Assembly (NCBI GenBank): GCA_943704425.1
Contig: CALSCP010001671.1
Coordinates: 1-49,960, forward strand
From: Ministeria vibrans ATCC 50519
Lineage: Eukaryota; Protista; Filasterea
DNA: 49,960 nucleotides
Reading direction: 5' to 3'
Shown: in pieces, positions 170-2,794 of the stretch
Position numbering within the stretch: the stretch's first letter is position 1
How the letters are laid out: every line of letters begins with the position of its first letter
Position numbers and translations under genes: made by a program
The notes under the pieces: generated by a model
What the model was told of the DNA's origin: nothing
What the model saw: the letters and a program-made list of their open reading frames with translations, nothing else
The model's database searches: none

Positions 170-211
170 GGTGTTTTTTAACACCACCACATTTTCAAAG
201 AATGAGAACGA
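170..211 (+). promoter_or_regulatory. Histone 3' stem-loop plus downstream purine-rich element (H4)
   Basis: GGTGTT-TTTT-AACACC (170-185) then ACCAC; GAGAACGA at 204-211. The same layout follows H2A and H3. Confidence 0.9.
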
Positions 212-275
212 AAAGAAAAATTTAAAATTGATTCTGATTTCTGTGTGTGACTGTGGAGTGACTGTACATGTCTGC

Positions 276-299
276 GTGTGTGTGTGTGTGTGTGTGTGT
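276..299. repeat. (GT)n microsatellite
   Basis: Perfect GT run. Confidence 0.95.
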
Positions 300-1081
300 C
301 AGTTATTGAAAGGACAATAGGCGGGTCCTACGTTTGTGGTGGTCATTTTGTTAGTGTGGGTGGTTGGGTAAGCACACGTAATTCAAAGTTCGTCGTCTCA
401 AAGATATCATGTAAAGTTTTGTTTGTTTGTATCAGCACAATGAGTGAGCACGCGTGTGCAGTTTGTGAGACAATCAAGCTTCAATCGTTGAGAGGCACTC
501 AAGGCAGCGACTTGGTGAGTGTCTCTTGTACTCACGTGCTGGGTGAGCACATTTCTCTCATCAATCACTTCATTGAGAATGCCAGTCTGCGTCCAGCCAT
601 GTCTTGTGCATTCTGTGTGTATCAGCATGGGAGAGTACTGAGTATTTTGTGAGGCGGGCGAGCATCGACTGTTGAGGGGCGGCGACTTAGTGTGTCTTGT
701 ACTTGAATGCTGGGTGAGCACACAACGTTTTTCTGTGCTGCGAAATGATTAGCCTTGGCGTTGAGGCGTTCTGCCTTCTGTGTGTATCAACACGCATATG
801 CACATGTTTAGTGTGGCAAGAATTGGTTGGTGATTGGTGAGAAGGGGCGAGCTCGCGAGTATTTTTTTGCGTTGCGCGAGCACACAGCACTAGTTTGCAA
901 GAGTTTCTTGCAAATTATTAGTGCTGTGCATAAAGATTAAAGTGGCGTCACTCATCCATGACATACAACGTCGTCAAGGTGTCGGTACTTTTTGTGCTGT
1001 GACTGCTGCTTGCTTTGGCGTTTGTGCCCATTTTTCCGCGAGTTTTCCATTCGCGTTTGCTGGGTGAGCACATTTTTTTTT
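293..1081 (+). ncRNA. Candidate array of about 5 structured non-coding elements in the histone spacer
   Basis: Units open with TGTRTCRRY and close with GYTG-SGYRA-GCACA; TGCTGGGTGAGCACA is exact at 537, 708 and 1058; the unit ends pair with compensatory changes; spacing 162-188 bp. Confidence 0.45.
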
Positions 1082-1277
1082 ACTTTCTCGCTGATACACC
1101 TTGTCTCACCACCGCACAGCATCAACGAACATAATACCCAAAGCACCATTCAACATCCAGTCACGAGTAGACGACTGTCTGGACGTACCAAACATCCTTA
1201 AGCTCAAAGAGTCACGTCTGGCGTCGTTTGCGTCAAGTGCAATGCAATATAAAATAAAATATATCATTATTTCTTTG

Positions 1278-1320
1278 TCGTTCTCTTTCTTTAGAAATGT
1301 AGGTGGTGTTTAAAAACACC
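1278..1320 (-). promoter_or_regulatory. Histone 3' stem-loop plus downstream purine-rich element (H2A)
   Basis: Minus strand: GGTGTT-TTTA-AACACC (1320-1305), ACCTA, then AAAGAAAGAGAACGA (GAGAACGA at 1285-1278). Confidence 0.9.
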
Positions 1321-1387
1321 AGAGGTTTGGTTTGGTTTGTGTGCGCATGGCAACACTTTGTTGAAGAATTTGCTCGGGGAGACAAAT

Positions 1388-1845
1388 TTACTCGGCGTCA
1401 GCCTTGGCCTTGCTCTTCTTGGGCAGGAGCTGCGAGTGGATGTTGGGGAGGACACCGCCCTGGGCAATGGTGACACCCGCGAGCAGCTTGTTGAGCTCCT
1501 CGTCGTTGCGGATGGCGAGCTGGAGGTGGCGCGGGTTGATGCGCGTCTTCTTGTTGTCGCGGGCAGCGTTGCCAGCGAGCTCAAGGATCTCGGCACCGAG
1601 GTACTCCATGACGGCGGCCAGGTAGACCGGGGCGCCGGCACCAATGCGCTGAGCGTAGTGTCCCTTGCGCAGCAGGCGGTGGATACGGCCAACGGGGAAC
1701 TAACGAGAAGGAGGGGAGATGGGTGAGACACAAAAAGAACCAACCACAACAAATAATCATTTTTATGTACCTGGAGTCCCGCACGCGACGAGCGCGTCTT
1801 GCTCTTGCCGGCAGATGCAGCAGTCTTCTTTCCTCGTCCAGACAT
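1388..1845 (-). CDS. H2A: Histone H2A (exons 1845-1771, 1699-1388)
   Basis: MSGRGK...SSRAGLQ|[13 protein letters not shown]...[32 protein letters not shown]...LLPKK; GT-AG intron 1770-1700; no C-terminal SQ motif. Confidence 0.99.
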
Positions 1846-2124
1846 GGTTTAGGTTAGTGTAGTGGGGATGTATTCGAAAATAACTGATCTGAAAAATCGA
1901 ATTCGATTCGAACACATCCAATTCGACAGGTGAGCGGTTCGGACCCGGGATACCCTGGCATTGGGAGCTGACCAATGAACAACGAGCTTTTGGAAAACCC
2001 ACTTTTTTTTGGCGCGCGAATTTGCCTAACGGCAACATTTCGCTTTCGATTAAACGACCAGATCATTTTAAAAAAAAATCAGTCGAATTTCTACACTCGT
2101 ACATCTAACCCACTTCCCATCACC
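1846..2124. promoter_or_regulatory. Divergent H2A/H3 promoter region with CCAAT boxes and an E2F-like site
   Basis: 279 bp between the ATGs; CCAAT at 1918 and 1972, ATTGG at 1960; TTTGGCGCGCGAA at 2008-2020. Confidence 0.65.
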
Positions 2125-2695
2125 ATGGCCCGTACCAAGCAAACCGCTCGCAAGTCTACCGGAGGCAAGGCGCCCCGCAAGCAGCTCGCCACCAAGGCAG
2201 CCCGCAAGTCCGCCCCCGCTGCCGGCGGCGTCAAGAAGCCTCGTAAGTGAACATCCCCTGTGTCCTTGTTGACAGTGTGAACACACGCACACACACGCGT
2301 GTGCCCTTTCCAGCGCTCCAATGCGCTCTTTCAATTTCACTCTTCTCGTTTTTTAAACTTGGCGCCTGTTTTTTTTTTTTTTTTTTTTTTTTTTGAACAC
2401 AGATCGTTACCGCCCCGGAACGGTCGCTCTCCGTGAGATCCGCCGCTACCAGAAGAGCACTGAGCTGCTCATCCGCAAGCTGCCCTTCCAGCGTCTCGTC
2501 CGTGAGATCGCCCAGGATTTCAAGACTGACCTGCGCTTCCAGTCGTCGGCCATTGCTGCGCTCCAGGAGGCGTCCGAGGCCTACCTCGTCGGTCTCTTCG
2601 AGGACACCAACCTGTGCGCCATCCACGCTCACCGTGTCACCATCATGCCCAAGGACATCCAGCTGGCCCGCCGCATCCGTGGTGAGCGCGCGTAA
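2125..2695 (+). CDS. H3: Histone H3 (exons 2125-2242, 2403-2695)
   Basis: [31 protein letters not shown]...KKP|[23 protein letters not shown]...RIRGERA*; intron 2243-2402 splits the H39 codon. Confidence 0.99.
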
Positions 2696-2752
2696 ATCAA
2701 GTTCTTTGATTTCCCAGCAACTGCTCCATCAGCTTCACAACAAACCAAACCT

Positions 2753-2794
2753 GGTGTTTTTTAACACCACCACATGTCCACACGAAGAGAACGA
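2753..2794 (+). promoter_or_regulatory. Histone 3' stem-loop plus downstream purine-rich element (H3)
   Basis: GGTGTT-TTTT-AACACC (2753-2768), ACCAC, GAGAACGA at 2787-2794. Confidence 0.9.

Follow-up and report, generated by a model that had tools for sequence, protein, structure and literature searches.

Histone stem-loops with an in-register downstream octamer and a candidate U7-like guide RNA in the filasterean Ministeria vibrans

Histone stem-loops and the protein SLBP have long been known in protists. The U7 small nuclear RNA (snRNA), which in animals has a 5' region that complements the histone downstream element (HDE), is defined by a UCUUU box, an Sm site of the form RUUUNUCYNG and a 3' hairpin with closing G-C pairs (Marz et al. 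2008, PMC5054213), and its restriction to metazoans was called "virtually certain" in a 2008 survey (PMC5054213). A first-pass annotation of the DNA described here had likewise started from U7 machinery as a property of animals, a premise that is now partly outdated: an October 2026 preprint (10.64898/2026.10.14.759114) reports homologues of LSM10, LSM11 and FLASH as widespread outside animals, including in unicellular holozoans, and describes a U7-like RNA predicted in Rozella allomycis by a low-threshold cmsearch with RF00066, together with LSM11 and FLASH-like proteins. In this paper, we report the analysis of a 49,960-nucleotide stretch of the genome of Ministeria vibrans ATCC 50519 (contig CALSCP010001671.1, positions 1 to 49,960 of the forward strand; hereafter the window, always meaning the whole stretch), in which histone genes H4, H2A and H3 share a stem-loop and, at a nearly fixed distance past it, the identical octamer GAGAACGA.

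We consider it moderately probable that the stem-loop and GAGAACGA together constitute an animal-type 3'-end processing signal of replication-type histone pre-mRNAs, guided by a U7-like RNA. It appears quite likely that a U7-type small nuclear ribonucleoprotein (snRNP) reads the octamer element, and a seven-copy family of small genes found elsewhere in the genome is slightly favoured as the source of the RNA of that snRNP. In the literature, we found no paper linking U7 or Lsm11 to filastereans or choanoflagellates.

Histone stem-loops and the octamer that follows them

Three histone genes (the end of H4, H2A and H3) lie within the first 3 kb of the window. Their features are as follows, with the stem-loops identified by direct reading and by pattern match and distances given in nucleotides (nt):

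1-95, plus strand: 3' end of the histone H4 coding sequence, with the stop codon TAA at 93-95; other H4 copies have identical 3' regions
170-185, plus strand: H4 stem-loop GGTGTT-TTTT-AACACC, followed by ACCAC
204-211, plus strand: H4 octamer GAGAACGA, the proposed HDE core, 18 nt past the stem
1278-1285, minus strand: H2A octamer GAGAACGA within AAAGAAAGAGAACGAC, 19 nt past the stem
1305-1320, minus strand: H2A stem-loop GGTGTT-TTTA-AACACC, followed by ACCTA
1388-1845, minus strand: histone H2A gene, with exon 1 at 1771-1845, an intron at 1700-1770 and exon 2 including the stop codon at 1388-1699
2126-2695, plus strand: histone H3 gene, with exon 1 at 2126-2243, an intron at 2244-2402 and exon 2 at 2403-2695
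2753-2768, plus strand: H3 stem-loop GGTGTT-TTTT-AACACC, followed by ACCAC
2787-2794, plus strand: H3 octamer GAGAACGA, 18 nt past the stem

The three stem-loops have a 6-bp stem and a 4-nt loop, are preceded by CCAAAC and followed by ACCAC or otherwise ACC-rich sequence, and stand 57-74 nt from the stop codon. Their pattern occurs three times in the window against 0.07 occurrences expected by chance. All three have a G-C base pair in stem position 2 together with a U at loop position 3, which are the determinants of SLBP binding given in the preprint (10.64898/2026.10.14.759114). The first-pass annotation had seen no AATAAA nearby, and indeed neither AATAAA nor ATTAAA is present within 300 nt downstream of each of the three stem-loops.

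That the same octamer follows the three stem-loops at 18, 19 and 18 nt, as the annotation had also claimed, was borne out by direct reading, by pattern search and by a shuffling test. For the latter, the three 45-nt downstream stretches were shuffled 300,000 times with their composition kept; an in-register 8-mer common to all three arose in 2 of the 300,000 trials (~7e-6). The octamer occurs four times in the 50-kb window, and three of these occurrences are the histone ones. Its claim that the spacer between stem and octamer diverges also proved correct, the spacers being unlike each other across the gene classes, and the H2A downstream stretch does read AAAGAAAGAGAACGA at the octamer region as it had stated. 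The octamer sits in a purine-rich run which begins 14-17 nt past the stem and contains AAAGAG or AAGAG. The distance of this purine core from the stem is the same as that of the HDE in animals.

Compared with the metazoan histone 3' signal (RF00032 and the HDE), the signal described here is alike in the size of stem and loop, the two SLBP-determinant positions, the ACC-rich 3' flank, the purine-rich element with AAAGAG or AAGAG 14-17 nt past the stem and the lack of a nearby poly(A) hexamer. It differs in that the stem is GGUGUU/AACACC, whereas in animals it is GGCYCU/AGRGCC; in that the conserved core is GAGAACGA rather than the AAAGAGCUGU of animals; in the presence of introns in the histone genes; and in the H2B and H2A.X genes, where a different downstream element and a small hairpin are found.

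The searches were extended to the whole assembly, which comprises 29.7 Mb in 2,860 contigs. Sixteen histone stem-loops of the GGTGTT/AACACC type were found genome-wide, and the octamer is present at +18/19 in all ten H4, H3 and H2A copies that have sufficient flanking sequence (five H4, three H3 and two H2A), even in an H4 copy whose 3' untranslated region has diverged. The three H3 paralogues are near-identical up to the end of the octamer and unrelated immediately past it, hence the conserved unit ends with the octamer. The 13-nt spacers are not alike in the different classes, yet the octamer is kept, which argues for selection on the element and against simple copying.

The protein encoded by H2A exon 2 is 85-93% identical to known H2A proteins; in the protein database no match exceeded 93% identity, and the organism's own H2A transcript was not among the best matches. 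Microsatellites of (GT)n and (CA)n and a 37-nt run of T occupy window positions 250-300, 2270-2300 and 2360-2395, in intergenic and intron DNA of the histone genes. The search for homologues of a 915-residue open reading frame (ORF) of the window was empty.

Protein partners and a candidate guide RNA

The RNA-binding domain of SLBP (PF15247) was detected in two adjacent exons at C1725:116234-116498 with 51.2 and 39.2 bits, both above the Pfam cut-off. The translation resembles the SLBP domain, with the Pfam SLBP_RNA_bind model matched along its whole length, and it differs from animal SLBP in reading TPD. Animal SLBP has TPNK at the corresponding place.

A scan of the genome for the LSM domain (PF01423) returned 24 matches, which by eye comprise SmB, D1, D2, D3, E, F and G, Lsm1-8, NAA38 and Lsm11. 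The Lsm11 gene, L074, is on the minus strand of contig C637; it shows a long N-terminal ORF, the Sm1 motif GYLVAFDKHLNLVLLDVDEHYR and an intron of ~105 nt between the Sm1 and Sm2 exons, with Sm2 reading RHINQ-LFLRGDNVVYV across the exon ends. When the ORF L074:1501-2058 (minus strand) was compared with all PDB chains, human LSm11 (9n96_D and 6v4x_D) was matched at an E value of 1e-14 and SmD2 at 2e-4. The alignment with LSm11 covers Sm1 and extends through the region that precedes the Sm fold, including the pre-Sm helix, and RHINQ-LFLRGDNV takes the place of Sm2. SmD2 is encoded by a separate gene (L065), which matches SmD2 at an E value of 2e-25. Judged by its sequence, L074 is the orthologue of Lsm11 and is distinct from SmD2. 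The loop between Sm1 and Sm2 is ~13 residues long, unlike that of human LSm11, where it is well over 100 residues. Lsm11 has no known role outside the U7 snRNP, which makes this gene the strongest of the indirect pointers to a U7-type particle. The intron of this gene (L074:1395-1500, contig C637, minus strand) begins with GTATAT and holds long (AAT)n/(ATT)n runs.

A guide RNA was sought with a wobble-tolerant pattern, TYGTTYTY followed within 30 nt by the U7-type Sm site RUUUNUCYNG (PMC5054213), and seven of its 69 matches are one identical 40-mer, present on at least six contigs. The family has seven copies, of which L095:495-588 (contig C1833:2394-2487) is taken as the example. The features of the candidate are:

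L095:495-505, plus strand: guide box UCGUUCUUUUU, which contains the UCUUU box and is complementary to AAAGAGAACGA with one G.U pair
L095:503-525, plus strand: weak internal hairpin, from folding
L095:525-534, plus strand: U7-type Sm site RUUUNUCYNG, here AUUUCUCCUG, from the pattern
L095:534-555, plus strand: short 3' hairpin with two closing G-C pairs, -5.6 kcal/mol, its first base being the last one of the Sm motif
L095:543-584, plus strand: alternative, stronger 3' hairpin; the 3' domain L095:533-590 folds at -15.5 kcal/mol

The alternative 3' hairpin ends a few bases short of the end of the invariant block (588). For the 5' end of the guide, the first-pass annotation had predicted UCGUUCUC(UU); the candidate reads UCGUUCUU(UUU), which agrees with the prediction except for one G.U wobble.

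Among the five or six alignable copies, the core from -94 to +94 has no variable column in 188. In the 136 nt just downstream of it, 36 of 140 columns vary (82 of 140 when C13, the most distant copy, is included). On the upstream side, 94 nt are invariant in five copies and the next 96 nt show six variable columns among three. Similarity among the copies stops ~210 nt downstream, beyond which the flanks are unique and have no shared ORF. An invariant core with a diverged flank and no common ORF points to a small constrained non-coding gene; the end of similarity, the unique flanks and the lack of a shared ORF led us to reject the unit as a transposon or as exon 1 of a family of genes. No Rfam family claims the candidate on either strand, and a metagenome scan for homologues gave 120 chance matches, none of them related.

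The candidate is like animal U7 (RF00066; PMC5054213) in its HDE-complementary 5' region, the UCUUU box, the deviant Sm site AUUUCUCCUG, the 3' hairpin closed by G-C pairs, the presence of several gene copies and the conserved upstream sequence. Two of these features, the UCUUU box and the GC-closed hairpin, were not imposed by the search pattern. That the family is a genuine filasterean U7 snRNA, expanded to ~95-105 nt with a further hairpin placed between the guide and the Sm site, is to us an evenly balanced proposition. A two-exon gene for an H2A variant with SRAGLQFPVGRVHRQLKQRK and an unusual C-terminal tail (C1833:2796-3342, in L292/L095; paralogous copy on C846) is found 300-900 nt downstream of two candidate copies and on the strand opposite to them; it has no counterpart beside the remaining copies of the seven.

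Competing readings of the octamer and the candidate

Several results weigh against the identification of the candidate, the octamer as an HDE, or both, and they are set out here with the explanations that they favour. The best placed of these explanations, which we hold to be possible though doubtful, accepts the U7-type snRNP as real and takes the seven-copy family for some other small non-coding RNA, perhaps transcribed from the opposite strand, in which the motifs occur by chance; the true guide would then have been missed by both pattern searches. The wobble-tolerant pattern matched 69 times against 93 in its control, hence a single match is not significant in itself. Complementarity to the octamer and the Sm site were both built into the pattern, and the Sm site thus provides no independent evidence. 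A hairpin comparable to that of the candidate follows ~3% of random positions. The layout is also unlike that of animal U7: the short arrangement of at most 70 nt with the box next to the Sm site is replaced by an RNA of possibly 95-105 nt (the block being invariant to +94), with a 19-nt spacer from the UCUUUUU run to the Sm site that is able to form a weak hairpin. In animal U7 the corresponding spacer is 3-4 nt. The covariance model RF00066 gives the candidate no score, even at E values up to 10, and the two strands fold similarly (-21.0 vs -18.1 kcal/mol), so that folding does not decide between them.

The snRNA genes of the genome bear on the same question. The U2 snRNA is represented by a single gene (100 bits, L096, C875:8522-8713, minus strand), the sole other snRNA gene found, and it has no upstream word of at least 8 nt in common with the candidate. 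The Rfam model search of the genome missed U1 and U5 at its pre-filter, and a real U7 could equally be missed in this way. Nor does the assembly contain ATACTTACCTGG, the canonical 5' end of U1; U1 and U5 have either diverged or are missing from the contigs.

Against the explanation by another guide stand the invariant 188-nt core with its diverged flank, unclaimed by Rfam on both strands, the UCUUU box and GC-closed hairpin that go beyond what the search imposed, and the lack of a better candidate among the perfect matches to the element. The perfect anti-HDE 11-mer TCGTTCTCTTT has 88 genomic sites, none of which has an Sm site and a hairpin outside low-complexity DNA; 76 of the 88 were fetched and inspected, the remainder being histone antisense or already seen. 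A search with the exact anti-octamer and a loose Sm pattern mostly returned a CT-rich satellite (unit CTCTATCACTTTGTTTCT) that is dispersed over the genome and was rejected as a guide since it is not an RNA gene. Two single-copy matches with a U7-like Sm motif were also discarded, one (L026) being antisense to an aminopeptidase P exon and the other (L056) lying at the 5' end of the proteasome Rpt2 gene. The CT-rich satellite, whose unit also reads CTCTCTATCACTTTGTTTCT and whose CT runs vary, is found on many contigs (for example L035-L038, L040, L050, L052 and L053) and yields many false matches to pyrimidine-rich patterns.

An explanation that we regard as unlikely dispenses with the guide RNA. 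The octamer would be functional as a protein site or as a downstream element of cleavage and polyadenylation or of transcription termination, and SLBP-assisted or poly(A)-linked processing, a route put forward for certain fungi and protists, would form the histone mRNA ends. The preprint (10.64898/2026.10.14.759114) describes lineages in which SLBP and stem-loops occur alongside sparse U7 machinery. The genome scan with RF00066 was blank, with a best match of 17.4 bits against a threshold of 34 and similar matches in bacterial control genomes; the same search missed U1 and U5, and this blank therefore means little. In the Rfam scan of the window no family attained its gathering score, the histone stem-loop family RF00032 included. 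No Lsm10-like protein is among the 24 LSM matches, in a scan that had no Lsm10 query and in an assembly of 2,860 contigs with intron-split genes. Of the proteins for which the first-pass annotation had proposed profile searches, SLBP and Lsm11 were recovered, and Lsm10 was not seen in the LSM scan.

The energies of pairing are not exceptional. The duplexes of guide and HDE range from -11.5 to -16.7 kcal/mol; the guide is U-rich, and 2-25% of random 50-nt windows therefore do as well, while the energies computed for the H2B and H2A.X elements are those of the background. Duplex energies were hence rejected as evidence, which leaves any pairing between the candidate and these two variant elements unsupported.

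The H2B and H2A.X genes themselves also speak for an octamer that works without a guide. Three H2B copies and one probable H2A.X gene keep the stem-loop without the exact octamer, which is consequently not required by every stem-loop histone gene; instead they have GGAGAT(A/G)CGATT or GAGATCCCGATT ~23 nt past the stem, and in H2B this variant element is partly within a small hairpin. That all histone genes carry the octamer is accordingly true of the window and fails genome-wide. The probable H2A.X gene (L015, C2250:72012-72027, minus strand; protein ending in Y and stop) has the loop TTTC, and GAGATCCCGATT replaces the octamer downstream. In the H2B copies (L003, L004 and L014), CCCTTAC.TTTC is followed by a small hairpin, TCTCCAGTGGAGA. 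The H2B gene of Capsaspora (one locus, L299:5380-5620, minus strand) has CCCTTAC.TTTC followed by the palindrome TTTCGAAA and a GGUGUU/AACACC stem with a 5-nt loop, the stem and the CCCUUAC.UUUC spacer being common to the H2B genes of both species. This similarity suggests a second downstream element, specific to H2B and conserved in filastereans, and it agrees with the assignment of the genome to Ministeria vibrans.

A guide-free octamer is opposed by the presence of an Lsm11 paralogue apart from SmD2, by the purine core at the distance from the stem that the animal HDE has, by the lack of AATAAA or ATTAAA within 300 nt and by the small gene under constraint that combines a complementary stretch with a U7-type Sm site. 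The proposal of the first-pass annotation that the octamer is an HDE for a U7-type snRNP is partly supported, namely by Lsm11, the SLBP domain, the purine core at the animal distance and the complementary candidate; RF00066 does not score the candidate, and Lsm10 was not seen in the LSM scan. Finally, that the shared octamer is functionless and was spread by recent duplication or gene conversion is very improbable: inside one histone class the copies hardly differ as far as the stem-loop region, so that concerted evolution does act on these genes, but between classes the octamer and its register are kept across differing 13-nt spacers, the homology of the H3 paralogues stops exactly after the octamer, and the chance of the in-register 8-mer is the ~7e-6 given above.

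A proposed mechanism and what it would mean

From the in-register element, the SLBP and Lsm11 genes and the constrained multi-copy small gene with its motifs, we infer a course of 3'-end formation guided by a U7-like RNA. SLBP would bind the GGUGUU/AACACC hairpin, and the octamer in its purine-rich run would act as the HDE. The candidate, if expressed from the strand on which it was described, would consist of UCGUUCUUUUU, the weak internal hairpin, the Sm site AUUUCUCCUG and the 3' hairpin, in this order, and would bind Lsm11; its 5' part would base-pair with the octamer and the preceding purines while an Lsm11-containing Sm ring holds the RNA. The snRNP would then position a cleavage factor between the hairpin and the octamer, and the resulting mRNA would end, without polyadenylation, a few bases past the hairpin.

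The preprint 10.64898/2026.10.14.759114, like the present analysis, claims that U7-associated machinery is older than animals. Its approach, in the available part, is protein homology and cmsearch, with no holozoan guide-target pair given, and its report of Lsm10, Lsm11 and FLASH in unicellular holozoans lowers the novelty of the present work. What is new here is an in-register target element in a filasterean-like genome together with a named complementary candidate gene. If the assignment is true, this would be the first histone 3'-end guide RNA outside animals that has been identified together with its target, and the design of the guide would be more flexible than the animal examples suggest. 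The candidate may serve as a seed for U7 searches in further protists, in which animal-trained covariance models fail.

On these comparisons of sequence, the U7-type machinery for histones probably predates animals, and RNA-guided cleavage of histone mRNA would, if the proposal is true, have been in place before animal multicellularity. As this close relative of animals can be cultured, the target together with the candidate guide makes the time of origin of RNA-guided histone processing accessible to bench experiment.

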